Below, piece after piece: positions 3,520-50,930 of a stretch of 64,000 bases of DNA. The stretch's first letter is position 1, and each line of letters opens with the position of its first letter. The stretch is from Octopus bimaculoides (Eukaryota): contig NC_068996.1 in assembly GCF_001194135.2 (NCBI RefSeq), positions 52,817,232-52,881,231 of the forward strand, in the 5' to 3' direction. The notes beneath the pieces are model-generated. The model searched no databases, had not been told where the DNA came from, and worked only from the letters and a program-made list of their open reading frames with translations. Both the position numbers and the translations under genes were made by a program.

Positions 3520-3820
3520 TGTCTTCTTTTATCTTTTATTTGTTTCAGTTATTGGTTGAGGCCATGCTGGGACGCTGTCTTGAACAAATTGACCTAGTAC
3601 TTACAGCATCAGCCTCTTTTGCCAAACTGCATAGTTACAGGGATGGAAACAAACCAATAAGTGGGGTGAGGACAAACACAGATTCAAAGACACACACACG
3701 CACATATATGACAAGGCCCCCACTTAGTTTTCTTTCACCATATTTGCTGACAATGCACTGGTCAGCCTGAGGTTATAGCAGAAGCCCGAAGTGACTGAAA
3801 CCAGAACCAAGTCCTTAGTT
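3520..3820 (-). mobile_element. tRNA-headed SINE (family B)
   Basis: Shares the aaagccttgtgagtggatttggtagacagaaactgaaagaagccc core and gaaacaagtaaaaga tail with copies near 11540-11930(-), 12160-12250(+), 16255-16985(+), 23470-23780(-), 51725-52100(+), 55850-56080(+), 63140-63260(-). Confidence 0.8.
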
Positions 3821-8795: not shown

Positions 8796-9687
8796 ACAAG
8801 CACAGACACATTAAAGGATATATTCACGAAAGTATGAAAATGCTTTTGCTTTAAATTACACAATCCTAAGTGGATTGGAATGCTTTAATGCTAAATTGTT
8901 TTTAATAAATGTGATTGAAGACGGATGATACATTCACCAATGTTCAATTAAAATTTGTATCATATTTGGCTATGCTAGGCTGACAAACTTGATAACTCCT
9001 TCAACATAAATGTTTGGCTTAACTAAATGAGCCTAATTAGAGAGCTTGCTATTAATGGAACAAAATTAGGACACAAACATTTATTCTCAATTAAAATACT
9101 GCTAATGTTAGTCAAACTATGCTTTAGAACTTTGAGCATGTTATTTCCACAATTATTGTACATTAACGATGTGTACATGTTTCGAAATTTATATAACTGT
9201 CTATATTATGTAATGCTTACATATAAGTATGAAAGCATTTTTCTATGTTCACAGACATAAGACAATTGTCATACAACTAACAGTAAGCTGACCCTATTTG
9301 CATTTCTCTTAAGTAGGCATTCATATAATGCACACACCCACACACCCACACATCAGATGTGCGCGCACACACACACACACACATACTCACTCACCAATGC
9401 ACAAACATAACAAAGTAAGGCTGAATTGACTTACATTTATCTCATACCTACTTCTAAATAGATAATTTGTTATCTAAATAAGACCTATATTTCTCATCTG
9501 CTTTTGCTCTCTCTCTCTCTACTTAGTGATCTACCCACACAATGAACAACCCAAATGCTTTCTGTCTGTCTGACAGACTCTATGCATTTATGCATACATG
9601 GTTATGTGTATGCAAGCACACACACACACACACACAAACGCACATACATCACACACATACATACATCACACACACACACATATACAT

Positions 9688-9718
<31 letters not shown>

Positions 9719-9849
9719 ATACATCACACACACACACACACACATCACACTCACATACAGATGTATATGTACCTATATATGTATATATCTACTACATATG
9801 TGGGAAATTCTGTCTGTGGGTGTGTTTGTTTGTGGAGTTGTTAGTCAAC

Positions 9850-10687: not shown

Positions 10688-12260
10688 TATACGCGTGTGT
10701 GTGTGTGTGCATGCGTCTGTATGTGTGCATGTACATACACACACGTGTGTTTGTGCATATGTGTATGCGTATTTGTGTCCTTGTTTGTGTGTGCACAAGT
10801 GTATGTGTGCATATTCATTAGCATTAAGATGTCTGCTTTTGTCTTTTTGAATTTTTTTCTTCCATATTGGGCTGGAAATGTCTACACCATGTCTGCAAGT
10901 CCCGATTTGTCTCAATTCTCTGCCATTAGATCTAATCCTATTGAGTAGGGTTACTATTGAGCGACCTTCAGCGCTTCTGTACTTTCCACTATCAATACAC
11001 CCCAGTTCTTCACCAGATTACTGTTAATCTATTAAATTGTTAATCTATTAGACTGTTATTCTCTCATACATTGACTTGCATCTGCATGTTCTCTTATTAT
11101 CTCTTTGCACAAGTCTCCCACAACCCGCCCTCACACACACATCCGCATTTAATGTTTTTTTGTGGGGGGGGGGGGCAACACTTCCTTTTACATGATCTAA
11201 GAAGGAAGCCTGCATGTGACTGTCTGACTCGCTAGATACGGCAGCTGAATCTCCCTGAAATCACAACCACCATCTTTGAAAATGACTTGTCGGATAGTGT
11301 GGTTCAGGTTCCTTAGATTAAACCACAAAAACTAAATATTCACACACACACACATGCATGTATGCATATACACACACAGAAATAAAACCAATCCAATGAA
11401 CCATTCAGCTGGAAAGTCAAAAGCTTGTGTTTATTATTCCAAACATTGATTTATTCGAAGAAACAGTAACCCATTTTGTTGTTATTTAACAGATTTCAAA
11501 ATTGCCCAAGATTCACTCATTGAATAATTTATCTTTCATATGTTATCTTTTGCTTTTTTCAGTCATTAGACTGTGGCCATGCTGGGGCACCACCTTGAAA
11601 ATTTTAGAGTCAAATAAACTGATCCAAGTACTTATTTCTACTATAAGCCTGGTTCTTATTCTATCATTCTCTTTTGCCAAACCACTAAGTTAGGGAGACA
11701 TAAACATACCAACATCAGTTGTCAAGCAGAGACAAGGACCAAACACAAACACAAACACACACACATATATTTGTAATAGGCTTCTTTCAGTTTCCATCTA
11801 CCAAATCCACTCACAAGTCTTTGGTTGTCCCAAGGCTATAGTAGAAGACACTTGCTGAAGGTGCTATGCAGTGGGACTGAACCCACTATCATGTGGCCCA
11901 GAAGCAAACTTCTAACCACACAGCCATTCTGCAAGTTAATTTTTTTTTTTTTTTTTTGTGAGAAAAATATGAATATTACAGAGTTTTGAAAAATTACCAT
12001 TTTATTAGTTATATGACTTTGAATAAACGTGAAATATGATTTTACTGAAATTATAATTACAGCTGGTTCTATTGGACTTATCTATAACATACAATGTTCC
12101 AATCAAGAATTAAGTGATGGGAGAATACATATACAGGAATCCCTAAAGACATCATGGTTACAGGTTCAGGGTCGCTGTGTGTGTCAAGTGTCTTCTCCTG
12201 TAGCCTCCGGCTGACCAAAGTATTGTGAGTGGATTTGGTAGGCAGAACTGGTGATGTTCC

Positions 12261-12680
12261 TAAAAAGGGACAGACAGAATAATCCTACAAAGGGACAGAT
12301 AGAATAAGCCTAGAAGTGGACAGATAGAATAATTCTAAAAAGGGACATATAGAATAAGCCTAGAAAGGGACACAGAATAAGCTTAGAAAGAGGAAAGAAT
12401 AAGCCTAAAAAGGGACAGAAAGAATAAGCCTAGAAAGAGACAGAGAATAAGCTTAGAAAGGGACAAAGAATAAGCCTAGAAAGGGACAGATAGATTAAGC
12501 CTTGAAAGGGACAGATAGAATAAGCCTAGAAAGGGACAGATACAATAATCCTAAAGAGGAATAGATAGAATAAGCCTAGAAAGGGCCATTAGAATAAGTC
12601 TAGAAAGGGACAGATTGAATAAGCATAAAAAGGGACAGATAGAATAATGCTAGAAAGGGACAGATAGACTAGCTTTAAAA
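12261..12680. repeat. Purine-rich minisatellite, about 24-25 bp unit (aagggacagatagaataagcctaga), roughly 17 copies
   Basis: Direct inspection; lies between two halves of a family B SINE. Confidence 0.9.
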
Positions 12681-18115: not shown

Positions 18116-18729
18116 TTTTCATATAATATAGAATAAAGCAAAAGTGATTATTTATTGTTTTTCTATGTTTAAATTGTATAAAATAAAAAATTAAAATGTG
18201 ATATAAATGAGTGTGTGTGTGTGTGTGTGTGCATTTGGTAACCTATGATTATATATGCAATATCCTCCATTTCAGGACTACCATGTGTGCCACAACCTTA
18301 TTTTCTGTAATCTGAAAATGACCACACTAATTTGAAGATAAAACAGAAACAAGGTATAGAATTTAGGAGACCTGTTTGGTGAGGCTGTCAATCAATGGTA
18401 ATTTTGATGCTTTGTTGGGTGGACCTTCAAGAAAGTTGGTACATGTTATAAGACTTGTCAATGTTAACTTTTAACCTGTAATCTTCAAATATTGTGACCC
18501 AAGAGTCTCTTATATGTCAGTGAGTTCAATCATGATTAATTACATAATTGTTATCTGCATGTCTGAAATGGTGCTTGTCAGTGTTTTAAACTTCAACACA
18601 AAATATATGAGGGCAAGTCAGAAAACAATGCAGTTTTTATCATAAGAGTCATTTTTTTAAATGAAATTATTTGATTAGAAAATTATTATTTCTAATTCTC
18701 ACAACATGAGATATTCAACAACAGTACTT

Positions 18730-19119: not shown

Positions 19120-20110
19120 CCAGATACATGAATAAATGAGCCATTTTCAAAATGGCTGCCCTGCTAGAAGCCTGTCAGAAGTAAAAAGTAGTGACTGAAT
19201 TCCTGAAGGAGAAATTCTTGTAAGCATTTACAAAAGACTGAAAAATGTTTACAAATATAAAACTTTAAACTAGAGCAATAAGTGGAGGTGGGCACACTGC
19301 CTTAATGACAATTCCAACAGACCAAAAAAGATTTTCATTTTAAGAAGGAAGAGCCATTTGGTTTTTACAATAATGAATCATAAGAGAAAACTACTAATGA
19401 AACTGGAGATATCAGGTCTGGACCTGAATAAAGTGTCTTCTGGATAGGCACATTATCAAAAACTGAAAATGACTCAAATAAAACATTAATCTTGCAAATT
19501 GTCGACATGCTTTGTAGTGACTGATCGTCAACTGTCAAACTTGTCAACAAGGAAAAAGCAGATGCTTTAATTAAAGCCGGTAAATGCATAACCATTGATG
19601 AGCTGGCATCAGAACTTGGAGTTAGCCATGATAGTTCTCAAGACATTATTGAGTCACTTGGATATTGAAAAGTGTGGTCAATGAGAGGGTAATTGTTGCA
19701 CTGTGCTCCTTGAACTTAGCAAAAGACAGAACCTTCTTCAAAGGCTCATAACAAGTGGTGAAACTTGGATTCATCATTGTAAACCTGAATCAAAAAGACA
19801 ATCAATGGAATTGTATCATCCAGTGTCTCTAAAGACAAGAAAGTTCAAAGCAGAAAGTCAACTGGAAAAATCATGGTGGCTATCTCTTGGGATGCTCAAG
19901 GTGTTATTCTTATCGAGAAGAGAAACAGATAACTTTAAAAGCAGACATTGAGATCCTTAAAAGACTTAGAGCAAGAATTTACTGTGCAAGATATGGAGAC
20001 AGATAAAATGCTTCAACACGGCAAACCTCAGAACAAGGGAGGCAATCACTTCTTTTGGGTGGACATCTCTGTCACATCCTCCTTACTCGACTTATCACTC
20101 TCAGATTCCC
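19120..20110 (+). pseudogene. Degenerate mariner (DD34D) transposase
   Basis: LLQRLITSGETWIHHCKPESKRQSME matches the (V/I)TGDETWVHHY.PESKRQSMEW motif; many frameshifts. Confidence 0.88.
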
Positions 20111-21472: not shown

Positions 21473-22092
21473 CAGTGGTTCTCAACCAGGGTTTATATGA
21501 CCCTTGGGGGGGGGGGCAGGAGTCCAAAGAAGATTTTGTTAAAGTTTGGTGCAATAGGTTGGTTATACTTCTACAATATGTGAAGGTGCATGGCTGTGGT
21601 TAGAGCATCAGGCTCACAATTGTGAGGTAGTGAGTTCGATTCCCAGACCGGACTGCATGTTATATTCTTGAGCAAGACACTTTATTTCATGTTGCTCCAA
21701 TTCAACCATGTGTAGAAACGAGTTGCGACGTCACAGGTGCCAAGCTGTATCGGCCCCTTTGCCTTTCCTTTGGATAACACTGGTTGTGTAGAGAGGGGAG
21801 GCCGGTATGCATGGGCGATTGCCGGTCTTCCATGAAACAACCTTGCCCAGATTTGTGCATTGGAGGGGAATTTTCTAGGTGCAGTCCCATGATCATTCAT
21901 GACTGAAGGGAGTCTTTACCCTTTTTACTTCTACAACATACGAGATACTTTAACAATATTTTATACAATTCCTAATAAAATTTAATTATAAAAACAGGGT
22001 TTTTTAAGTAAGTGGCTATGGGGGGTCCATCTGAGTAAAACAAGAATCAAAAGGTCAATAAGCAAAAAAAAAAAAATGGCTGAGAACCACTG
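21473..22092. mobile_element. hAT/Charlie-like MITE containing a nested SINE
   Basis: TIRs cagtggttctcaacc / rc of gctgagaaccactg; no clear 8-bp TSD. Confidence 0.7.
21580..21925 (+). mobile_element. Full-length family C SINE with 14-bp TSD
   Basis: tacttctacaatat (21566-79) and tacttctacaacat (21926-39) flank the element. Confidence 0.85.
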
Positions 22093-24887: not shown

Positions 24888-27188
24888 CATGAACAACTAC
24901 AAGTCATAAGTCTAAGATAACAAGTTAACTTGTGCATCATAACAGGGGTGCCCCCACTGAAATAGTTGGAAGGGAAAATAACTTAAAAACAACTAAAATG
25001 GAAAAACAAAACCCCATAAAAGTCAAACTTTTTCAAGCAAGGGACGTGTCCATCTGCATTGAGTTGTATGAGAGAATGTGTGTATCAGTGAGTGTAATGA
25101 GTGTGTTCGTCTGGCTATTAAGGAGACAGGCTATATTGTCCATATTTGGTCAAACTCACTCAACAATTGTATTTAGAAATACAGTAGCAGGACTGCCATT
25201 GTCCTTAACAGTAATAATAATCACCATATACATATGTACACACACACACGCACACACAGAACTGGTATTAATTTACTAAGGATATCTAAATGTTTATTTA
25301 TATATGTATGTACATATATGTATATATTTATACAGACACACACAAGCACTCACACACTCATACACACACATGAATAATAATATAATAATCTAATTTTGCC
25401 AATATAAGGGCAGTAGAAAAAGGTCATGACAACAATCAATTTCAGTGACGGGCTTCCCATTCATTAGTGTAACTTTAACCTTTAAAATAATTCTCCCAAA
25501 TTTACACTGTTTTCCAAGGGACCTCTAAATGAATACAGACAACATCCATCATACACTGTATAAGGCCCAAACAATAAAAAGAGAGGAAAAAATTAAAATG
25601 AGATTAAAGGAGGAGAAATAAGCTTATATAAGTGAACATTAGGATAAATAGTCAAAACAAAATGTTAATGCTATGAATTAGATAACAATATTAATGGAAT
25701 CTTTCAAATAAACAGAGGGCTACTGACTTGGAATGAAGTTATTTAAAAGACCCATTTCAAAATTAGTGACAACCAACAATCCTAACTCGGAAAAATGTTG
25801 GAGAACAACAAGAAAAATATATATATATTATATATATATATATAAACATAAAGGATTTTTTATTTTATTTTTTTTTCTGGTAATTTTCTCATACAAAACA
25901 AGACTTGAATATTTATTACAGCGGCATATTTTTGATTTCAAGTTTTATTTTGTTGAGAATTGAAGAAAAAAAAAAAAAATAAACAACCCAGAAGTGAAAT
26001 ATACAGATGAATAAAAAAAAAAATAATAAAGGATAAAATGAAAATCAGATAAGAGATTTCAAATTGATTTTGCTGCTTATTTGGAGGGAGAGATTTGTGT
26101 AATATCTGTGAGATTTCTGGGCAACAGCCAAAATGATAAAAGGGAAATTAAACTTTCTTTTGGAAAAAGGGAAACAAAGAAAGGCTCTGTTATAATAAAA
26201 AGGAACAGAGAAAGATAGATTAAATGAAGAGGAAGTGTGAATATAGCTTTCCTGCTGTATTAGGCATTAAGCAACCATCTTGGCTGATAGGTCTTTTCTC
26301 ACTATCTCCTCAAGCAGTGTTGACTTATTAAGAAATACTTAACATGTATGAAAGTGAAAAGGAAGCATTTAAAGGCTTCATTAGATGGTTTGGGTTTTTT
26401 TTTTTGTTGCTCTCTCTCTCTTTCTCTCTCTCGCTCTCTCTCTCATCAGTAATCTATAAGAGCTAAATAGATTTGGAAACTGATTATCTTTTATATAAAA
26501 GATACAGAGCCCATTTGTTTTTCTCCAATATTTTTTTTTTCTTTTTTATTATTTTTTAAAATTTTCATAAAGGTAGTGAATTGCTTGATGAATTTAATCT
26601 GCACCAGATTTCGGCTGAGAGCTGTACACATCTCACACCATCAACTGGTGTACTGAGTAGATCTGGTTCCCATTTCAGCAGCTTATAGAGTTAAACATTA
26701 AAAAGGAAGTCAGAGAGGATAATTAACAGAAGTTAATTGATAAATACAAATAAATAATCCAAGGCTCCTAAAAGAGTGTACTTTTCTTTCATAACAAGAC
26801 AGGTAAGTTGGTTTGTGTAAGTAGACTAAACAAAAACACCAACCAAGTGCTGCCAGTAGGTCTTCCTCACATTCATATACAGATATACAAAGGGAAGGGG
26901 GAATCATTGGTGGTTTTGGGTTTTTTTTTCTTTTTTTTTTTTTCGAGATTCAGATTGCATCATGAAGCATTGACACAAGCTACAGTTAGGAATTTGAAAC
27001 AATTTAAACAAATAAAAAATAATTGAAGAGAGATTTCATTCAAAATTTTATTTTCAAACAGCCTATAAAGTATATCTTAATAGTTCAGGATTTTTTTACG
27101 TTTTTAATTTTTAACCACAATTTTATTAAATTAAGAGGTATGGAAGCTGCTAGGAAATCCACCATACACTAATTTAAAGAGTTTACTT

Positions 27189-27220
<32 letters not shown>

Positions 27221-28483
27221 CTCTTATTTCATCATCAAAGTAAGAGAATACTATTTTAAGATTGTGTTGTACATCATGAACAAGTATTTTGAGCCATACT
27301 TGTGTAAATATCTAATTACACTGAAGAATAATTGCAACTGCCAAAAACAGGTAAGGACAAAAATAAAAGGGGGGAGGGGAATGAATAAGGGGAGGAGAGG
27401 GAAAAATTGACTTTACAGAAACTATTTACATGAAGGGAAAATTAATTTAGAAAATAAATTAATGGCAATAGCAGCACTATAAAACAATATTTATGTGGAA
27501 ATAAATAATGTTAGTGTCCAGGTTTATGACAGCACATTCATCATTGATTTAAATACATGAGCCAATAGATATCTAAGTTATTTCTTAAGCTATCAGAAAA
27601 GAATTGGCTAAAATAATTTCAGTTATATGACTAATATGGAAAAATAACCCCATTTCAACCACATACACCAGCAGTGTTTACAAATTGCTGTGATAGATCA
27701 TATACTAACCAAATGAAATATTCAATATATATTTTTTAATGGTGATATTATAACTAACACACCATTTTTAAGTGGATTTTATTTTATACATAAATTATTT
27801 ATTTTATTTATTTTGTTTATTTTATGTTTTTTTTACAATTTTATTTATACAAATTTTCACAAACTATAATTAAATACATTAAAAGCCAGCTTAGTGGCTT
27901 CTCTTTACTATGTTGTGAGTGGGCATAGCATGGTTGTGCCAGAGAAATGTAAGGTATTAGGAGAGGATAGGTATCTGGAGAGCAAGGAGAAGGAATGCAG
28001 GCATACATGCAGATAATGCACAGAAGTGTGAGAGAAAACAAAATGATGAGAGAAATAATGGAAAGACGACACATGCAGCAACATAGATACACCATAGAGT
28101 TCCTAAAACATTCACAGAAGGGGAGGGGCAGGGAGATCTCAGATAACAATTGCAAATTACATTAACATATCCATAATTATTATATTAGTAATACTTCTGA
28201 GAGTATAAACATAAGTATACATCTCTACAAAATTCATACACATTAACATATACACAATACATACACAAGCTAACACCCACACATACATACACACATTGAA
28301 GAGCAGAACAAATATATAAAGCCCACAAATGTGTACAGAGTATACACCCACCCTTACTACGTCCAGCCTTGACAAAAAAAACATTCATCCAACCATCTGA
28401 CCCACCCTTCCCCCCACTCCCTACAAATCTACACTAAATATGTTGCTTTGGTCAAAAGAGTCCTGCTGCTGGAGCCAGATGCT

Positions 28484-28509
28484 TCACTTATTTTCATTCA
28501 CTTGCCAAA
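28484..28509 (-). CDS. Syb: Syb alternative terminal exon 3, coding part (V)WQVNENK*
   Basis: ttcttttttttttctcttttcttaaatttcag|tt tgg caa gtg aat gaa aat aag tga; very strong acceptor, followed by about 3.6 kb nearly free of dispersed repeats. Confidence 0.78.
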
Positions 28510-29137
28510 CTGAAATTTAAGAAAAGAGAAAAAAAAAGAAAACATCAATGTATGTGCACACATACATACATACATACATACACACACATATATATATATA
28601 CATATACATACACAAAATCAAAACATGCTATGTTAAAGCGTATTTTTAAAACTAGTTTCATGAATCAAATATACACACACACACGAGGTATAGGTAGTAT
28701 TTGTGGACAATTATCAATACATTACTCTCTTCAAACCAATTAAAAGGATTTTCCTATGGCAGACAAAATACAAGAAATGAAAGTCATTATTGCCATGTGT
28801 GTATGTGAGAAACAACATTTTATATGTTGCAAGATCTTTGGTATACAAAGTTCAGATGGAATTGGAAGCCCCTCATGAGAATGTTTAGGGGTCCCCCCTC
28901 CTTCTTTGATACACTTCATTCTCAATGAACTATCAGGAAACAGTAACTCATCCAACCTTATTGATATGGATCCCAGAAAATCAATAAGGGCCATCACCAA
29001 AGAACTTCTGGTGTCAGAGTGGACATTCAATACAAGTCGTCTGTATTGAGGGGAGACCAATTCTGCAAAGACACAGAAACCCATTTGATCCATGCCAAGA
29101 TTAAAACCCCTCCACAAACATGGCATGCTTTGGTTCA

Positions 29138-29151
29138 TCAAGACCCAAAAT
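29138..29151 (-). CDS. Candidate Syb terminal exon, (D)FGS*
   Basis: ccatctctcatttctcttgttag|at ttt ggg tct tga; good acceptor but lacks the V-W signature. Confidence 0.35.
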
Positions 29152-30191
29152 CTAACAAGAGAAATGAGAGATGGCTATGTACAGATGCTTCTGATGTCCT
29201 CAGAGTTTGTAGAAATTGTGATGGCTTTAGGAATGGTGAGTAAAGAAGATCATATCATATCTTTCCACAGGGTCTCAGTGTTTTTATGATAATGTAACAC
29301 CAAATTTGCTATGGACTGCTACGTCTGGTGTGTTGTTTAAAGGGAGACTAATCAACATTCTCACAATACACATTTGCACTCATATGACAAAGAGAATGTG
29401 AGAGAGACTGCAAGCAGACAGGAAAACATTCTACTATGTAAAATTGAATTTCTTTTAACTTACTTTTATCAAAATGCTACATAGCTAACTAAATATAAAA
29501 CATAGATTGCTCCAACCATAATTATGTATATTACAACATTTCAATGAAATCTATTAATTATTAAATTTATAAAGCATGTCCTTCAATCAAATACACATGG
29601 AAACATTAAAATTCTTTTAAAATATTTTACATAGTAGCATTTATATCTTAGTAGAGTTAGAAAGAAGAAATAATAACATCTTTAATAGCAATAATTGAAC
29701 AGTGATGGAGCAATTTTAACTTCATAACTTTGAAAGAAGTGGGTATTAAAGTTTAACAGTACAGGAAATTTAACCTTCTGTAATAACATTAAAAATATTA
29801 AGGTAAATAAAAATGTACACTATCAAAATGAAGCTTAAATGTTCAGACATTAATAAGCACCAAGGCACATTCTAATATGAGTGGTGCATGGCAGCACGGA
29901 TACAGCACCATACAGTTGAAATTCTGTTGTAGATGATTTTACACCTTCACGGAATCAATAAAACCAGTATTAAGAGTATACTGAAAGTTCCTCAACAATT
30001 TCCTTCTGCTATAAACCAATAAGTTTGTTTCAATGTGTATTGTAGCTTATTTTACAAAATTAATGTTTTGGTTTACTTGGAGATTTACATATTCTGAAGC
30101 CACCACCAAAGTATTTCAAACCTATGCTTCAAAACCATTTAAACACCAAATTACTAATCTATTAGTAATCACAGATCTCAATACTGTATCA

Positions 30192-30229
<38 letters not shown>

Positions 30230-30754
30230 AGCTTAACAATCTAAAACTTTTCTTGAAATATTTTAACAAATATTTTGCAGAATCTTTCACTGCAAAACAA
30301 TTCCTTACTACTTAAGGTCTGCATAATTCTCTTGTATATAGTGAACACTGTTTTAGCTGTTCAGTTACACTCTCTGATCACTTGCATTCAGTTAGTCCAT
30401 CTTCACCATTCCATGCATCATGCTAAATTTACTCCTGCTGTTATACAATATCACATTCTGCACTCCTGTTTATCATTGTTACAAAAAGTAAAAGTGTCCA
30501 CTAAATATATAGATTCCATAAAACTTACCAGGGTTCTCATATAAACAATTTTAGAACACTGAATTAAATGAAGGCTATGTTATTGTTAGGTAACTAGTCT
30601 CCAGAAGTAAGAGAAATAAATATTTGAAAATATGCACAAGTGCACAGAAATCACAATATATGTAAGTCCTGAAGAAATATCTGTACATTTCAAACTATAT
30701 CAATTACATAAATGTTTAAAATGAACCTGTTCTATCACATAACCCATTAGGATT

Positions 30755-30800
<46 letters not shown>

Positions 30801-30863
30801 AAAACATATCAGGAAAGAAACATACTCTAAAGAATAGAGAAATAATTGTTACAACAAAATTTT

Positions 30864-31218
30864 AATTCTGGTCATAGAGTTACCAAAAGTTTCGTATCTG
30901 CCAAAGTCAAAGCCTTGTGGACAGCTTGTCAGACTATACAAAAACGAATTTAAACTTTCTACCATGCGGACATGAGGAAACACTCAGATATCAAGATTTA
31001 AGGCCCAATGTATAAACATGTTAATGAGGATGAGTTGTCTTCTCTGGACCACATGATAAAACAACCCTTAGAGACCCAAAAAGGCCTTATCAGCAAACAG
31101 GGAGATCAGATTTTCCAGCAGACAGCGCCGCTTGAAGTGGACATGTTTAGAGTTTTTTTTGTCTTTGTATTGAGTCTGACGAGCTGTCCACAAGGCTTTG
31201 GCAACTATGACCAGAATT
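30864..31218. mobile_element. MITE-like inverted repeat within the Syb 3' region
   Basis: aattctggtcatag...aaagccttgtggacagcttgtcagact is inverted as agtctgacgagctgtccacaaggcttt...ctatgaccagaatt. Confidence 0.85.
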
Positions 31219-31411
31219 TATATATATATATATATATATATGGCAATATTTAACATCGAGATGTTAACAAAGACAGGAAATAGAATAAAAACAATTTGTT
31301 TTGCACAAGAAAAAAATTGTTGATGCAAAATAAATATTGGAATCAATATTTCCATGTACTCAACTGCAGATTACTAAATTTTAATTATTGTGGCTAGACA
31401 CTATTCAAAAT

Positions 31412-31817
31412 CAAAAAGGAAATAATTCACCATCACTAAAAAGTGACCAAGGGTGCAGGGAACACCAGCATTGCTAGAAATAAGAGTCAAAGACTCTTTA
31501 GCCACAAAAGCATATGTTCTATGTACTGACAAGGGAGACAACCTCCATCCTTCAAGGGCATTAGATTGGCAAACCAATTTTGCATGAAAATTTAATGCTT
31601 ATCAGTAACACTCCGTTGTGGGTGATGAAGCTGAAATTTCAGCAGTCAGTATTTATAGCATTTACCATAGGAATCAGTGGCTGATCCAGCAAAATGGTAA
31701 TGTGAAAATTATAAAATAACTAAGGTGGCTGGACACAATTTAAAACCAAAAAGGAAATAATTCACCATCACTAAAAAGTGACCAAGGGTTCAGGGAGCAC
31801 TAGCATTGCTAGAAATA
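31412..31817. repeat. 71-bp direct duplication (31412-31482 and 31747-31817)
   Basis: caaaaaggaaataattcaccatcactaaaaagtgaccaagggt.caggga.cac.agcattgctagaaata twice, 3 mismatches by eye. Confidence 0.9.
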
Positions 31818-33727
31818 TATGAAAAGGCATGATTCTCAAGCTTGTATGAGAAGCTGCTACATAAAAGCCATATCAGAATAGCTGATACAAAAACTCATTC
31901 ACTTTACTGTAGCACATCATGAACAATAGGATTTCAGTATTACCTGGAAAGCATTAAATGTACATAACTGTTTCTCCAATAAAAGATGGAAAATTTTGAC
32001 TTTACAAAAAAAAGGCTTACTGTGTAAACCCCAACATTAGTAGTCCTACTGAAACAGTTCTATTACATGCAGGTAGTTAGCTGAAAAACTTAGATGCAAT
32101 ACACAAATCCTTCTTCTTAGTCCATACCGTGTCTCCATCTAGCCGACGATGAGCAGTGTCAAGGAGAATGATGAGAGGATGTGAGTGTTATATCACACGA
32201 GACTGTGTATTTTGATGAAATTTACATACAGACCAAAGAGTGCAGATGAAAGAATGGATTTTCAAAGAAACTGCTACATGGTAACTCACACTGCCAAATC
32301 TTTATCCAGTTTTTAAACAGCAGTATATCAACAGTGACTGTACATTGCTCAGTATATATTAAATATACAAGATAGAAAGACTGCTTCAATACTGGACCAG
32401 AAACACTGACATGCTTGTACTAAATAGCTCTTATTTCTTTAATTATATCATTTAAATATTTTGCATGAGGAAGCATGTTTAAATTGTTGCACTTGTCAGT
32501 ACTTCAACTATTTACAAGTAATTCTGGCATTGTTTTTGCTGACAGATCTTACTTTGTTTGAAATAAGGAGCTTTATCTCAATAACATTTTTAAAAACTCT
32601 ATAAAAAAAACTCACTACTACTTTTCCACTCAGTTATTCTGACTTAATTTCAAAATTTTGAATTAGCGGATACCAGAAGTCGTCACCAAACACCAGCTGA
32701 TTTACAAAATTCAACATTATAATAACTTTGCCTACATTAACAGTAGCCGATGTAACAATTGTTATAATTTACATCTTATTTTTTCTAATGTATTCCACGA
32801 AACACCATACATGATTAATCAATGTTACATATCATCTTTCTTTTCAAAATCAATATTCTTAGGAAATATCACTTTCTCCCATAAAGTCCTTATTAATGTA
32901 ATGTACCTTTACAATTTCCAAATAATTAATCTAAAGAGGACTCTTACATAAGAATTCCTTATTTACTTACTATGTATATAAGATATTTAACTCACTGAAT
33001 TATAGAATAAAAATTGTCAATTCACAACCCTTCAAATGTTAGAAAACTAACAAATACCTCACATGCACATATCATTTCTGTTTTTTAAAATTAGAAAAAA
33101 AACTCCCATCTCAGTCATCATTTCACCTACAATCCCTAACTTTCACATGTCTGAAATAACTATTTTTAAATATTTGCTCTAGTTACTTCAATTGTAAACA
33201 CATTCCACTTTTAATTTACAAAATGCTTTTATTCTCAACACACCATACTAGTTTTAATAACAATTCTTCAGTTCTAAAACATTAAATCAAATTGTAATTA
33301 ATGAAGTATATTTGCATTTTGATACAATTATAAGTGATATAAAAAAAGATAAAGCAACACTGTTAAGAAACAATATGAAATAATATTTGAACCTCATAAT
33401 TCTGAAAAACTGCATCATTATCCCAAATAAAAACTAATACTTGCACTGCTTTACCATTAAATTAGATTCTTAATGGAAATAGTAAATTGTATTTTGTTGG
33501 CTAAAGGCTTTATCTAAAGTAATAGTATAGATAATGATTTGAACAATCCTTAAAACTCAGTAAGATGATGAACTTTCATACACAATTCAAAAAATAAGAC
33601 TGACAAAAAGAAAAAACAAAAGAACTAAAAAAAACAACCCACATACACACAAGTATAAAATAATAAAATTGGACCATTAAAATAATTACAAAAATCACAA
33701 CATCAAAAGAATGAAAATAATCTACCA

Positions 33728-33753
33728 TTAGCCATATTTGTTGGCTACCCAGA
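33728..33753 (-). CDS. Syb: Syb alternative terminal exon 2, coding part (V)WVANKYG*
   Basis: ttttcatttctcttctctcatttgccatgcag|tc tgg gta gcc aac aaa tat ggc taa. Confidence 0.75.
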
Positions 33754-36700
33754 CTGCATGGCAAATGAGAGAAGAGAAATGAAAATAACTTTAGTATAAA
33801 ATCCGTCAAAGGATAAGATTAGTAAAAAGAAATTGGAATAAATTTAGTTCTATTACTGTTATTAATAATTATAATTAGGGAAATTCAATTAAATAAGCAT
33901 TTAATTTTGAAGTCATATAGTAAATGTCTTTAAATCTTAAGTTGTGATTTTTGATTAAGTATTTGACTAAAATGAGAATTATGCAAATTGATGAATACAA
34001 AACTGTAAAATGTTCAATTTTGAAGAAAATATATTAAACTATTATCAACTTTACAAGACCATAATCTAATAGTTTCCATTTGTAATGCAAAGCTATAAAA
34101 CTTTAAGATGAATGAGAATATGAAGATACATATCGTGATGCATTCAAACAATGCTACATTTAAAATAACTTTACACAACATCTAAAAGAAAACACACACA
34201 AACATACATAAATAGTATTCAAGAAGTGGACTTAGTGCACATTACACAACAAATTGAAATGCATGCACCATATTAAAAATCTGAAAAGGCTATTTTAAGA
34301 GGAATTATGTGAAAGTGTAAAGATAAATGATAAATTTAAAGAATTATGTATAATCCGATATTCTATAGTTCCCTAAAATTTAAATCTACAAGTTTTTCAC
34401 CGATTGTAAAATGTAGATTTCAAATTCTATCATTAGCGTTCGGCTTTGACAAGAAATATTTTAAATACATAGCATTTAAGTCGTTACTTATAAATTGAAC
34501 ATAAAAGAATTAATGAATACACATTTTACAAATTAATGTTATGTATATATTTAGAATTCTTTTAAATTTTTAAATGTTCAGTTTGTATAGTAAAAGTGGT
34601 GTAATGAATTCATAAAAATAATTAGAAAGTAATTATGGATATAGATTTACTCAAAAGCCCAAAATATATCCTGTACCAGCCCATCTTTATAACTTTCCTG
34701 AAATTATTTCTTGCAGCAATATAAACTATTCTGGCTTCACTTCAGATATACACCAACTGTTTACTATAACTGAACATAGCTACTTTTGTTTCAACAGGCA
34801 CAAAAGCAGATTGCCAGATAACTAATGAGCTTTAAAAGATATTAGTGGTCCTATAGATGATGTTAAGAGTGCAAAACTCTCAGTACATATTCCTCTAGCA
34901 TCTTTAAACTCTACAGATATTCATCCCAGAAGAAACAATATTTTAAAGATTTTTCAAACATGTAGATGCACATAGTTTCAACTTCAAATAAACTGAAATG
35001 ATTTACATTATGAGTTTCTTAAAGTTCTTTCATTTCAAGATAATTTGTACGGGAAATAAAGATAAGGTAGAAAGTACAATTAACATTAATATGTTTTGAG
35101 CGTGGCCGTTGCCAGTACCACCTGACTGACCCTTGTGCCAGTGGCACGTAAAAGCACCCACTACACTCTCGGAGTGGTTGGCATTAGGAAGGGCATCCAG
35201 CTGTAGAAACTCTGCCAAATCAGATTGGAGCCTGGTGTAGCCATCTGGTTTCACCAGTCCTCAGTCAAATCGTCCAACCCATGCTAGCATGGAAAGCGGA
35301 CTTTAAACGATGATGATAATGTTCCATAACAGGCTCAAACAAAACAGATACGAGGCTTTAATTAAGACCACATTAGAGAGAGAAACCCGATTCAGGGCTC
35401 CTCATTTGAGTGAATTTTTTAGCAATATGATTAAGTGTGCTACATGGAAAGACATACTGTATACATAAAAACCTTACTAGAAACTACCTGTTCAAAACCC
35501 AAGACTTCTGGTTAGAATAGAATACATACTGGTAAACTGCCTGATTGGAAAATTGCTAACAAATCTTTTAGAGCTTCAAGTGATGCATTCTATAGACTGT
35601 GTGGAATTTAACATAGGCAGTACTGTGCATGAACAGAAACACACGTGTATGTGTGTGCGCGTGCATGCGTGTGTGTATGCATGAGGGAATTAATAGACAA
35701 AGTGTTTTTACTCTAAGCATGAATCTAGATTCTACAACAGGTCATTAAATGAGTTCAGATATTTTTTTGTTTCTCCAACAACTTTGCGTGAATCGTTTAA
35801 AACTTAATCTGAGATCTGACGAATTGCTGTATCAAGGACAGGTTAATATTGCAAGTATCTGAAACACTACAATAAATACGAGAGAAAATGAAGGGCTTAA
35901 GCTAAACGAATGAAGTCTTAACATTCAGACATCTCAGTCAAATGTAATACTGACTTATTTATATTGCTTTTAATTAATCACACAGTAATCTGATTATTTT
36001 AAGATAACACTAATGATAAGGTTAAAAGCAAGAGGCCATAAAACCAGTAGAATATTTGGGAGGGATATATCTAGTTTGTGGAGGTGCATGGTTTAGTGGC
36101 TAGTGTTGGATTCATGATCATGAGATTGCGGTTTCAATTCCTGGATTGGGTGATGCGTTGTGTTCTTGAGTAAAACATTTCATTTCACGTTGCTCCAGTC
36201 CCCTCAGCTGCCAAAAACGAGTGATACTGTGACAGACTGGCATCCAGTCTAAGGAGGAATTATATTCAGAGAAACTGGCTTTATGCTCCTTGTGGAGTAA
36301 TGAGGACTAACCAACCTATAGCTAGTTTAAATTCAAAAAGTTTAAACAAAAATTATTTTTTCTTACAATGAATAAACTAATATTATATTTAATTATTGTT
36401 CAATATTAATCAGAAAGACAAAGTTTTGAAAATGTATATTTCACAGCAATGATACAATTCAAGGGAAAAGATTTTTGGTATCTAAAATAATTAGAACTCT
36501 GACAAGTCATTTCAAGGAAACTTGTGCAAAACCGAGATAAAGAGATGAGGAACATCATTCTTTATTATGTTTAAAAGGGGTAAAATCCAATACTTTATAG
36601 AATTGGAGTCTAAGTAATTGGTAGCTTGTGTTAGATTCCTATAAGGGCTGATTTAACCCGTGGCTAAGAACTAATAAGATGAATATTTGATCAACTGCAC

Positions 36701-38083
36701 CAATATGTTCCACCAAGTGTTATAGATCAGACTAGTTATTGCTTTTGTTTCACTTCCAGGACAAAAGAATATAATATCCCTAGAAACAATATTTTGGGAA
36801 AAAGAAAACCAACGAAACTATTAAAATGGTAAACTTTCACATGGTCATTCAACCTGCTAAAATTATAGCCAACCGTAATCTCAACTCTTTAGTATTCAGG
36901 TTACTCTCTCAAACGTAATGCTTATTTATCCACAGAGTTTTCAATTAATCATGCATTATCTTGTAGAGATTTTCATGGTGCGACTGCTTATTTTTAGAAT
37001 GACATTGAAGGATAGGTGTGAGAGGCCAGATCAGGCTAGTTTTAACATAAAAATGGTAAAACATTTATGCTGGATATGGCTCAGTTTGAATGTTAAAGAG
37101 TTAAATCACACTTTACTGCCTTAAATGATTTAGGCCAAGAACTGTCATTGGATTAGATCATTAAATACTAATTTAAACACTAAAATAGACCAAATAAGCA
37201 TACTAATACTTAAGGTCTCCTACCTTAAAAAAGAGGCAACGTGTTTTGATAAACAACTTATGTTGAATATATTAGAATATCTAAAAATAATATATTTCTA
37301 AAAAATCAGTCAATGAAAATCAATACCAGAATTCTAAATTCAAATAGATAAATCACTAAATAGAACTAAAATCTAACATCTACAATCACAAAGTAACATA
37401 AAAAATCTGACATCTACACAAAGGATTATGGGAAATTTCGCCGTAAATATTTTTGCTGTTGGAAAATTAGTCATAAGAAATTTCGTTAATGACTTTACAG
37501 TTTTTTAATGTTTGACATTAAAAATTTGCCTATTAATGCTTTTACAAAACAATGATTTATTTATTTAACAAAATGCTGATATAATTTTCCATACAGTGAA
37601 TTTGTTTTAGGGCGAATTTTTTCAACACATACAAGAAGCTAACTTTTAAAAGGTAAAACAGTAAGAAATTCCTACATTTTACTCCCTACAACCATCAAAA
37701 ATAAAATTAAAAAATGCATATACAGTCAAAATCTCTTAGCAAAAATGAAAGCCACAAAATAAAAATGCCTAAAAAATGATAAAGATTAATTTTTCTTGGT
37801 GTGTGTATGTGTGTGTGCACGCGCATGCATGCACAAGCAATTTTGAAATATCTTTATGAATTTAAGTGCAACAATTAGGAAAATTCCTGTGCTAAAAAAA
37901 AAAAACACAAAAAACATCCTAACAGCAGAAAACCAATACACACAGTAGAACTACACTTGAATCTCGGACAAAACATCTACCTGTATAGACAACATGTACA
38001 ACATCTAATGAATACCAAGATTGTGTTGGATAGTGCAATATATTCATAAGACAAGAAATTTGAGCTTACACATCGCAAAGTAT

Positions 38084-38100
38084 TTATGCGAACACCCAGA
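38084..38100 (-). CDS. Syb: Syb alternative terminal exon 1, coding part (V)WVFA*
   Basis: ctatttctttgtcttcctacctatgacag|tc tgg gtg ttc gca taa; strong pyrimidine tract; the phase-1 G from the TM exon completes Val. Confidence 0.7.
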
Positions 38101-43889: not shown

Positions 43890-43997
<108 letters not shown>

Positions 43998-44310: not shown

Positions 44311-44362
44311 CAATGATAATGATAATAATCACAAGTACAATGGTAACAAGAATAGCGATCAT
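44311..44362 (-). CDS. Syb: Syb alternative transmembrane exon B, MIAILVTIVLVIIIIII
   Basis: ctcttttacag|atgatcgctatt...attatcattg|gtaagt; same length (52 nt), phase and donor context (ATCATTG|GTAAGT) as exon A; 17 hydrophobic codons. Confidence 0.85.
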
Positions 44363-44665: not shown

Positions 44666-45145
44666 GCGTGCAAGTGCAAGATAAAAAATAATGACATTCC
44701 AGAATATATTTCAAAGAAGAAGGAAAAGAAAAAAAAAAAAAAGAAAGAAAATGAAAGAATGAAAGAAAGATAGCAAATTTGCTTTGCGTGCTATGGGGAA
44801 AAAATTCAAATGCAAATTGTCAAAGTATATAAAACTTGAAATAAAATTTCTAAATTGGCATTCAGTGCTGGAGAAAAGAAAAACACTTTCAAGATGTCGG
44901 TTCAGTAACAATCAGCTTTCATCTGGTTGAAAGGTTATTTTTATTTCATTTTTTACCACTCAACATATTTTCATACAGTAACCCATACTTTCTGCTCGTT
45001 TTATAAACGATAAAATTTAAAACAAGCAGAAAATTACTGCATATCATACTGAGTGGGCAAAAAAAAAAAAAGTGTGATTTCCAGGAAGCTGTTGTAAACA
45101 AACTCAACAGGAAAGTGATTGATAATCGATGGCACCAGCACTTAC

Positions 45146-45197
45146 CAATGATTACAGTGACAATGGCTGCCACAATCGCACCAAGAATTATCATCAT
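45146..45197 (-). CDS. Syb: Syb transmembrane exon A, MMIILGAIVAAIVTVII
   Basis: aatttcag|atgatgataatt...gtaatcattg|gtaagt; 52 nt, phase 0/1; canonical VAMP TM segment. Confidence 0.95.
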
Positions 45198-46488
45198 CTG
45201 AAATTATTCAGTAATAAGGCTTCATGATTTATACCATGTTCATAAAATAATTCTACCAGGCTGTATACATTCTAAAATTTAAACTCCTTAATTATTGAAT
45301 TGAAAGAAAACAAAGAGAAGAAAGGAAATGGTCATCACATTTCATTTTTATATAAGATATGTGTTATGGATCAAGTATCCATAATTGAAGATCTTAACTG
45401 TTATCCTGCCAAATTACATACAAAGGCAAATTGAAGATAAGCTTCTTATGTCACTACTCATGGAGACAAAAAATGTAGCAGGGCACATCTAATTCGAAAT
45501 TATGTACAATTAAAAACAGAGTTTATTTAAAGCCACAATTGTAGCCTAATGTAATCTTATGAAAAGTCATGACTGTGGCTTTTAGCAGGGTAACAGTTAA
45601 TATTTTTGAAATAATTACAGAAAGTATGAGTCAACATATTTAATTATCTGAACACTATATTTTGTAAAGCTGTTGAAAGACTATTCTTACATGTATAAAA
45701 TAAAGTGCCAAGAACATTCTATAATGTAAATGAATACATTTTTAAAAAGAAATTTAAATACTTTAAAAAAATTTTTAAATGTTTTGTACACATTTTTTAA
45801 TCCAGAATAAGATTTCAAAATTAGTTCACAAATTACCAAGATATAAAATAAATTACTCTAACAGCTTTAAAGTCAGTTTAACTTAGTAAAATAATATACA
45901 GATTAACTATATATTTCATCATTTAACTGCCACTCTCCAAGCAAAGATGCATTGGAAGATTCAATAGGATCCAACAAATCAGAGGACCGTGACATGCTCC
46001 AATGTCTTTTATTGTGGTTTCCAAGGTCGGATACCCTTTCTAACAACCACTTGACAGAGCATACTGGTTGCATTTTCATGCTACCAGCAAGACTAAAAAA
46101 GAACTTAAAGTGGCCCCTAAAACTGAAGGAGACTTTAAGAGCGTAATAATTTTTAGCAAGGTAATGAAAGACAGTAAAGAATGATAAGAGGAACAGATTT
46201 TTAGCAGTGTGGTAGTAGTGGAGGAGGGAGTAGTATGGAAGGAAACAGGGAAAGGGAGGTCAGGGTCAATGGTTAGTGAGAAAGGAAAGGTTAGGATTGT
46301 GAAGGTGATGAGACTGGCTGTGTAGAGGGGGTATTCTGCATTATAAGGGTGAGTATGAACGGTAGGCTTGAGGGGAAGGGAAGATGAAAGAGACAAAATA
46401 GATGAGTGGCAAGAATCCATGAAGAGTCAATAAGAGGAGCAGGAGTTGTTGCGGACAGGCTGGTGTGGGAGAGATGGTGTAAAAGCTG

Positions 46489-46543
<55 letters not shown>

Positions 46544-47492
46544 NNNNNNNNNNNNNNNNNNNNNNNNNNNNNNNNNNNNNNNNNNNNNNNNNNNNNNNNN
46601 NNNNNNNNNNNNNNNNNNNNNNNNNNNNNNNNNNNNNNNNNNNNNNNNNNNNNNNNNNNNNNNNNNNNNNNNNNNNNNNNNNNNNNNNNNNNNNNNNNNN
46701 NNNNNNNNNNNNNNNNNNNNNNNNNNNNNNNNNNNNNNNNNNNNNNNNNNNNNNNNNNNNNNNNNNNNNNNNNNNNNNNNNNNNNNNNNNNNNNNNNNNN
46801 NNNNNNNNNNNNNNNNNNNNNNNNNNNNNNNNNNNNNNNNNNNNNNNNNNNNNNNNNNNNNNNNNNNNNNNNNNNNNNNNNNNNNNNNNNNNNNNNNNNN
46901 NNNNNNNNNNNNNNNNNNNNNNNNNNNNNNNNNNNNNNNNNNNNNNNNNNNNNNNNNNNNNNNNNNNNNNNNNNNNNNNNNNNNNNNNNNNNNNNNNNNN
47001 NNNNNNNNNNNNNNNNNNNNNNNNNNNNNNNNNNNNNNNNNNNNNNNNNNNNNNNNNNNNNNNNNNNNNNNNNNNNNNNNNNNNNNNNNNNNNNNNNNNN
47101 NNNNNNNNNNNNNNNNNNNNNNNNNNNNNNNNNNNNNNNNNNNNNNNNNNNNNNNNNNNNNNNNNNNNNNNNNNNNNNNNNNNNNNNNNNNNNNNNNNNN
47201 NNNNNNNNNNNNNNNNNNNNNNNNNNNNNNNNNNNNNNNNNNNNNNNNNNNNNNNNNNNNNNNNNNNNNNNNNNNNNNNNNNNNNNNNNNNNNNNNNNNN
47301 NNNNNNNNNNNNNNNNNNNNNNNNNNNNNNNNNNNNNNNNNNNNNNNNNNNNNNNNNNNNNNNNNNNNNNNNNNNNNNNNNNNNNNNNNNNNNNNNNNNN
47401 NNNNNNNNNNNNNNNNNNNNNNNNNNNNNNNNNNNNNNNNNNNNNNNNNNNNNNNNNNNNNNNNNNNNNNNNNNNNNNNNNNNNNNNNNNNN
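46544..47492 (-). other. Assembly gap, probably containing the missing Syb exon (about 80 nt, DALQAGASQFE...WWKNxK)
   Basis: The expected phase 1/0 exon between ELDDRA and MMIILG was not found in called bases 45198-49412; this is the only gap in that interval. Confidence 0.65.
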
Positions 47493-49412: not shown

Positions 49413-49491
49413 CTGCTCTGTCATCCAGTTCGGAGATTTTAGAATCTCTTTCCAAAACTTTATCAACATTCACGCGCATAATATCTACAAC
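49413..49491 (-). CDS. Syb: Syb exon, [26 protein letters not shown](D)
   Basis: tttcttcag|gttgtagat...gacagagcag|gttagc; 79 nt, phase 0/1; zero-layer Arg in VLERD. Confidence 0.96.
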
Positions 49492-49718: not shown

Positions 49719-49824
49719 CTCTTCAACTTGAGCCTGTGTTTGTTGCAACCGTTTACTTTGCTGGACAGGCTGAGGAGGGCCTTGTGGTGGGCCAGGAGGG
49801 CCACCAGGCTGTGGTGGGCCTGAC
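49719..49824 (-). CDS. Syb: Syb exon, SGPPQPGGPPGPPQGPPQPVQQSKRLQQTQAQVEE
   Basis: tttctttag|gtcaggccca...gttgaagag|gtaatt; 106 nt, phase 2/0; contains the start of the SNARE motif (RLQQTQAQV). Confidence 0.96.
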
Positions 49825-50888: not shown

Positions 50889-50930
50889 GGTGGACCCCCA
50901 GGGCCAGCCTGTGGATTTTGTGGTCCAGAC
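50889..50930 (-). CDS. Syb: Syb exon, (M)SGPQNPQAGPGGP(P)
   Basis: tttacttag|gtctggaccacaa...ggtccacc|gtaagt; 42 nt, phase 2/2. Confidence 0.93.

Follow-up and report, generated by a model that had tools for sequence, protein, structure and literature searches.

In how many ways can the octopus synaptobrevin gene end? The question is raised by a stretch of 64,000 nucleotides from Octopus bimaculoides (contig NC_068996.1, positions 52,817,232 to 52,881,231 of the forward strand), here called the window and numbered from its first base, whose minus strand carries a synaptobrevin/VAMP gene according to a motif scan and direct reading. A first-pass annotation had picked out three splice acceptors, each of which would continue the split codon at the end of a transmembrane (TM) exon as Val-Trp (V-W) and reach a stop codon a few residues later, and had proposed that they open alternative last exons. 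We consider it probable that the region is the 3' part of the octopus gene for synaptobrevin, a tail-anchored R-SNARE of the brevin type, and that its C-terminus is modular, with at least three alternative last exons. As to the identity of the gene, PF00957 is present on all protein matches retrieved with it. The cytosolic part with the SNARE-motif exon (49413-49491, ending in a phase-1 G) is 100% identical, over the shared residues, to squid synaptobrevin (PDB 1L4A chain A; P0030), and the gene product is nearly identical to the Octopus vulgaris protein CAI9734828.1. Coordinates refer to the minus strand unless another is named.

Direct reading reproduced the three acceptors and their peptides exactly: VWVFA at 38100 (tail 1), VWVANKYG at 33753 (tail 2) and VWQVNENK at 28509 (tail 3), each followed by a stop codon. 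Their spacing, given originally as about 5 kb, is 4,347 and 5,244 nt. The acceptors had been called strong, and the pyrimidine fractions of the 20 nt that precede them (0.75, 0.80 and 0.85 for tails 1, 2 and 3) agree with this; the other acceptors of the gene lie between 0.60 and 0.90, with 0.60 for TM exon A and 0.75 for TM exon B, which the tails equal or better.

Upstream of the tails are two TM exons of 52 nt each, TM-A (MMIILGAIVAAIVTVII plus the phase-1 G; 45146-45197) and TM-B (MIAILVTIVLVIIIIII plus the phase-1 G; 44311-44362). TM-A is identical to the TM segment of CAI9734828.1, and TM-B has 96% nucleotide identity to positions 446-497 of a cephalopod RNA-seq contig (L001, described below). 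Both exons start in phase 0, encode 17 TM residues and end ATCATTG/gtaagt inside a split codon, and it is this G that each tail completes to Val before adding Trp, as had been claimed. In composition they differ: the fraction of beta-branched residues is 0.76 in TM-B versus 0.59 in TM-A (0.67 versus 0.44 in the N-terminal half), and TM-A has one Gly, TM-B none. Since inclusion of both would shift the frame, we infer that TM-A and TM-B are mutually exclusive.

Terminal exons 3 and 2 and their counterparts in relatives

The coding part of terminal exon 3 (28484-28509; ...atttcag/TTTGGCAAGTGAATGAAAATAAGTGA) has a stop codon that ends at 28484. A C-terminus-centred search led to a Logan open reading frame (ORF; P0122) on two RNA-seq contigs from separate runs, L001 (SRR27666087) and L002 (SRR24189492). 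These are spliced mRNAs of another cephalopod, with 88-96% nucleotide identity to the window exons, and they use TM-B. In both, TM-B is joined directly to a terminal exon that reads GTA TGG ACA GTG AAT GAT AAC AAA AAA GGC GGC AAC TGA and encodes VWTVNDNKKGGN; the stop codon and the next ~250 nt then align in register just below window position 28484. Between positions 532-752 of L001 and window 28489-28282 the identity is 71% over 233 nt, and the shared blocks, some of them long and identical, include TGAAGCATCTGGCTC, GTAGATTTGTAGGGAG, GTAGTAAGGGTGGG and ATATTTGTTCTGCTCTT; the conserved proximal 3' untranslated region (UTR) of terminal exon 3 covers 28230-28483, and the similarity fades past ~28230. 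Because TM-B is spliced to VWTVNDNKKGGN and the UTR aligns in register, tail 3 is confirmed, by transcripts from this other cephalopod, as an orthologous terminal exon that is expressed and whose proximal 3' UTR is conserved. The conserved block is a candidate regulatory element, which makes isoform-specific regulation plausible. The class to which tail 3 belongs (V-W with a polar, Lys-rich end) is also represented by VWAVTANQKDDGQK in a chiton, VWAVADQKNKSSG in an oyster, VWVVTSQKKE in a nemertean and VWVVTSQQKKE in an annelid.

For tail 2 the evidence is comparative. The coding part of terminal exon 2 (33728-33753; ...catgcag/TCTGGGTAGCCAACAAATATGGCTAA) and the chiton exon at position 28832 of locus L003 (TCTGGGTAGCAACAACGTATGGTTAA, encoding VWVATTYG) are both 26 nt long and share 21/26 bases. 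The octopus peptide fits a conserved class ...[NT][KT][YF][GSTA] followed by a stop, annotated in molluscs such as Mytilus (VWLYNKFG), Magallana (AWVASTYG), Haliotis (VYFVTNYG), Ruditapes (AWVASKYS) and Potamilus (AWVATKYT) and found as well in the priapulid Priapulus (VWIATKYA). These matches mark tail 2 as the cephalopod version of an old "...KYG/TYG/KFG" tail.

The layout as a whole recurs too. In the chiton Liolophura sinensis (locus L003) two TM exons of 52 nt in the same phases (25257-25308 and 26235-26286) are followed by terminal exons encoding VWVATTYG (28832), AWVATKYS (30251) and VWAVTANQKDDGQK (32501); in the snail Biomphalaria glabrata (locus L004) TM exons at 19762-19813 and 21811-21862 are followed by VWVTQG (23900) and VWVVTSTGG... 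(25719). All the lophotrochozoans sampled share an additional intron, by which the TM segment becomes an exon of its own, in two alternative versions. TM-A belongs to a class (MM.ILG) found in all of them and in vertebrate VAMP1/2, and TM-B corresponds to the MW.ILI class exon of the chiton and Biomphalaria. Like the octopus gene, the lophotrochozoan sets in RefSeq/Gnomon (Liolophura X2/X5/X6, Biomphalaria X2/X4/X6, Mytilus edulis X7, Magallana gigas X7) have two 52-nt TM exons and then several tails opening V-W or A-W, in the same order of classes, with short or ...YG tails proximal and the K-rich polar tail distal. The octopus differs in that TM-B starts with MIA and not MW, its introns are two to three times longer, and it is without the long Ser/Thr/Pro-rich luminal tails of gastropods. 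With tail classes recurring in bivalves, annelids, nemerteans, a priapulid and echinoderms, the modular layout is, as far as such comparisons can tell, ancestral and not an octopus invention.

Do two TM exons and three tails give six C-termini? At least that many had been claimed; that TM exons and tails combine is supported in relatives only. Annotated gene models of these contain several pairings: in Liolophura the same tail is borne by model X2 (MM) and by X5/X6 (MW), and in Biomphalaria models X2, X4 and X6 combine MM with VWVTQG, MM with VWVVTSTGG... and MW with VWVVTSTGG.... Among cephalopod transcripts only TM-B with a tail of the tail 3 type has been seen. An alternative is therefore to accept all three tails and to suppose that the TM exons are coupled to particular tails, or that each tissue has one fixed pair, giving far fewer than six C-termini. 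The sole cephalopod transcript type, met in two independent runs, is what such coupling would produce, and in several molluscs the retrieved models put long or K-rich tails on MW exons and the short tail on MM exons; against this, the Liolophura models place one tail on both TM exons and the Biomphalaria models place two tails on MM, one of which is also on MW. We regard coupling as a possibility to be kept in mind, though a doubtful one.

None of this is new as annotation. The novelty implied by the first reading of the sequence does not stand, as RefSeq already holds such isoforms (X1-X7) for many molluscs and the O. vulgaris entry is itself named "isoform X5"; as genome annotation the finding is ordinary. 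No paper describing these isoforms, or this architecture in molluscs or cephalopods, came up in literature searches on the topic and with peptide strings.

Some annotated models carry C-termini of other kinds. In Physella X3 (P0066; ...DVAYSYWCSCCHYYHY...) and Magallana (P0012; ...DVVNSYCNHSYYNH...) the residues past the first TM exon resemble an out-of-frame translation of the second, which suggests double inclusion of both exons in these models. The O. vulgaris "synaptobrevin-like isoform X5" (CAI9734828.1; P0121) continues from TM-A past the gtaag donor into the intron (...VII-GKCWCHRLSITF...); the window translation of the TM-A intron (compare 44949-45203) shows only a few differences from it, which points to an Octopus near to, yet distinct from, O. 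vulgaris. Comparable read-through models, continuing "GK..." or "GE...", occur in Ostrea (X1), Patella and Lottia. Such read-through C-termini look like intron-retention artefacts of annotation and not real ends of the protein.

Tail 1 and the chance expectation

The proposal of alternative terminal exons is thus borne out for tail 3 by cephalopod mRNA and UTR and for tail 2 by a peptide, length and nucleotides that have been kept; for tail 1 it is the start, the acceptor and the position that speak. The coding part of terminal exon 1 (38084-38100; ...cctatgacag/TCTGGGTGTTCGCATAA) runs from (G)TC TGG to TAA, and a 3' UTR of its own would extend toward lower coordinates. Its cag acceptor, with a YTRAY motif at -40, comes before any other V-W acceptor past the TM exons, in the position that the annotated VWVTQG tail occupies in Biomphalaria. 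The heptamer TCTGGGT (V-W-V) is common to tails 1 and 2 and to the chiton and snail exons, and the full CAG/TCTGGGT to tail 1, tail 2 and the chiton exon. The peptide bears no more than a loose resemblance to the short proximal class (VWVTQG, VWATQG, VWATTS and the echinoderm VWATQ). The squid protein known from cDNA, which we take to have 125 residues and a V-W tail of five, would have the length of TM-A plus tail 1.

Could V-W starts simply be frequent? A recurrence beyond chance had been asserted, and the count agrees. The probability of TNTGG following AG on the minus strand is 0.0052. Of the YAG sites on that strand, 100 have a pyrimidine fraction of 0.75 or more over 20 nt; V-W starts occur at four of them, where 0.52 were expected (Poisson P = 0.002; P = 0.0017 by resampling). 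Three of the four are the reported tails and the fourth is at 18326. The plus strand has 49 comparable sites with a stop inside 12 codons, and not one of them opens V-W. The site at 18326 (ttag/TG TGG..., encoding VWSFSDYRK) was considered as a fourth tail and rejected, as it has a ttag acceptor and a peptide in no conserved class, and its number fits chance; a possible fifth at 3626 (VWQKRLML), which appears at a looser threshold, was rejected for a peptide that likewise falls in no conserved class and a number that fits chance.

This leaves the case in which only tails 2 and 3 are genuine and the sequence at 38100 resembles an acceptor by chance and opens T-C-T-G-G by coincidence. Chance alone would put about 0.5 V-W starts among the strong acceptor-like sites of the minus strand, the candidates at 18326 and 3626 resemble such noise, and the tail 1 peptide is close to none of the classes. 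The interval from TM-B to tail 3, however, spans only about a quarter of the strand, so the local chance expectation for tail 1 is roughly 0.1 or less, and a chance site would also have had to acquire the full CAG/TCTGGGT of tail 2 and the chiton exon and the first place past the TM exons, like Biomphalaria's annotated short tail. We therefore think this case improbable. On its V-W-V start, acceptor quality and position, tail 1 is very probably real. That all three sites are coincidental or decayed pseudo-exons beside a single functional terminal exon is hardly credible: nothing beyond the absence of same-species transcript data favours it, and it runs against the chance statistics, the multi-tail layout of the chiton and snail loci, the orthologous transcript and conserved UTR of tail 3 and the phylum-wide class of tail 2.

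Are the tails copies of one another? Aligned pairwise, the tail-exon regions score no better than shuffled controls and have no extended nucleotide similarity; the one comparison to exceed its shuffles was that of tail 1 with 18326, itself a candidate at chance level. Recent duplication of the tail exons is thus rejected. If the tails are related by duplication, the duplication is old, which fits the phylum-wide distribution.

Several points weigh against the reading of a modular C-terminus with at least three last exons. Common descent of the tail exons rests, given the lack of extended similarity, on few coding bases. The transcripts come from another cephalopod and not from O. bimaculoides, and for tail 1 no orthologue or transcript was obtained from a collection nearly void of cephalopod VAMPs. 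Of 20 predicted products (three N-terminal variants combined with TM-A or TM-B and the tails, and two read-through forms) none has an exact record; this means little in the collection of 5.8 billion proteins, which is nearly blind to cephalopod VAMPs, the only cephalopod matches in the protein-collection searches being the squid fragment from the PDB, a single read-through model of O. vulgaris and a single ORF from Logan. AATAAA or ATTAAA lies about 0.5-0.7 kb past each stop, and in the AT-rich background such hexamers occur 2-4 times per kb, so that poly(A) signals are indistinguishable from it. Lastly, the functional consequences suggested for the variants are all extrapolated from mammalian proteins. 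In JGI metagenomes, a cephalopod-specific exon-3 DNA pattern and a protein query found no cephalopod transcripts; the 80 loci returned belong to other animals. The 3' UTRs had been put at several kilobases each, and this was not upheld: a UTR of the tail 3 type was seen over at least 557 nt.

Proposed mechanism and likeness to known anchors

How might such a gene work? The donor of whichever TM exon is chosen (17 residues plus G) would be spliced to one of at least three last exons, which would complete the Val and add the interface Trp, three to six luminal residues, a stop codon and a 3' UTR of its own. The tails differ in chemistry, VWVFA being hydrophobic and uncharged, VWVANKYG having one Lys and VWQVNENK being polar. 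Choice among them would follow the standard selection of alternative last exons, in which a transcript that takes the proximal acceptor stops at the poly(A) site of that exon, and one that bypasses both can go on to the distal exons. By extension from mammalian work, the TM exon would set the flexibility of the helix and hence fusion-pore behaviour, and the tail would set the hydrophobic length and terminal charge of the anchor, with effects on membrane insertion, on sorting and on the energetics of a C-terminus pulled into the bilayer. Separate 3' UTRs would permit post-transcriptional control of each isoform; the coupling of anchor chemistry to mRNA localisation or stability that had been put forward is speculation.

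The analogy with C-terminal splice variants of mammalian VAMP1, drawn at the outset, proved apt. In VAMP1A (...VIV/IYFFT; P0040) and VAMP1B (...VIV/SKYR; P0117), as in the octopus, one split-codon donor joins alternative terminal exons, and the intron falls past exactly 17 TM residues. The VAMP1 terminal exons likewise encode only the last 4-8 residues, each with its own 3' UTR. As the intron position is the one at which VAMP1A and VAMP1B diverge, the octopus tails are the counterpart of the vertebrate last exon. In vertebrate VAMPs the TM residues are fused to the preceding exon, and no alternative TM exon is known. A further difference is that every octopus tail keeps the V-W interface; none has the strong basicity of SKYR in VAMP-1B, so a mitochondrial switch is not implied.

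That such differences can matter is known from other systems. In tail-anchored proteins the hydrophobicity and charge of the tail influence targeting, and in VAMP-1B the terminal charge redirects it, to mitochondria (PMC4592070); natural variants of v-SNARE TM domains that differ in beta-branched residues and Gly, as TM-A and TM-B do, alter the kinetics of the fusion pore (PMC7239655; also PMC5460238 and PMC4972536). In Caenorhabditis elegans the exons 8a and 8b of unc-64/syntaxin are chosen in neurons by the RNA-binding protein UNC-75/CELF (PMC4946901). Like the octopus gene, unc-64 is a neuronal SNARE gene whose alternative 3' exons encode different C-terminal anchors; unlike it, unc-64 encodes a Q-SNARE and not an R-SNARE, has the whole TM domain in the terminal exon and offers no combination of TM exons with tails.

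A second likeness concerns the TM exons. The TM-A class resembles the anchors of vertebrate VAMP1/2 (MMIILGAICA.../IYF.T), and the lophotrochozoan MW class resembles that of VAMP3 (MWAILIAVV.../VWSVSS). Vertebrate VAMP2 and VAMP3 are separate genes, whereas the mollusc alternatives are exons of one gene. A single mollusc gene may thus cover by splicing what vertebrates split into paralogues, and either common descent or convergence could account for it. In its boldest form, which we offer as a long shot, the idea is that protostome synaptobrevin is an ancient module in which a VAMP2-like or VAMP3-like TM exon is combined with three classes of tail, each with its own UTR, and that neurons and other cells use it to match fusion pore, sorting and mRNA handling to the type of vesicle; vertebrates would have resolved the same alternatives into paralogues after genome duplication, and the ~250-nt UTR block of tail 3 would be the cis-element that ties anchor to mRNA fate.

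The octopus tails, then, join the known pattern of alternative last exons in VAMPs, and are of less interest in themselves than the 2 x 3 modular anchor found across the phylum and its parallel with vertebrate paralogues; the likeness to the anchors of VAMP2 and VAMP3 bears on the origin of SNARE paralogues. One gene here supplies natural, old variants of both TM helix and tail, in an animal with a giant synapse that is a classic preparation for work on transmitter release; if the isoforms are specific to tissues or vesicles, they would be ready-made tools for separating the contributions of anchor and tail.

N-terminal exons, the assembly gap and repeats

Upstream of the SNARE-motif exon lies a Pro-rich N-terminal exon (SGPPQPGGPPGPPQGPPQPVQQSKRLQQTQAQVEE; 49719-49824), placed by direct reading and alignment with L001, and before it a 42-nt cassette exon (SGPQNPQAGPGGPP; 50889-50930). 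The cassette is present in the O. vulgaris protein and skipped in the L001 and L002 mRNAs, which indicates that the N-terminus is alternatively spliced as well. It opens GTCTGG, one base off the GTCAGG that opens the next exon.

The juxtamembrane exon (ALQ..., the KRKFWWKN segment) was not found anywhere in the window in a search of its whole length. Both the O. vulgaris orthologue and the L001 mRNA contain it, and the TM anchors themselves are in the window. An assembly gap of 949 N (46544-47492, unstranded), flanked by (GA)n, presumably hides it; gene models built on this assembly would break there.

Among the repeats of the window are a 25-nt tandem repeat (~17 copies) and long (GA)n and (CA)n microsatellites (12259-12668, 43895-43997 and 9617-9759, respectively), of which the (GA)n sits in the intron between TM-B and tail 1. 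The intron before tail 3 also contains, close to the acceptor (28740-29141), an ORF of 133 residues; it matches no Pfam family and probably arose by chance or from a repeat.

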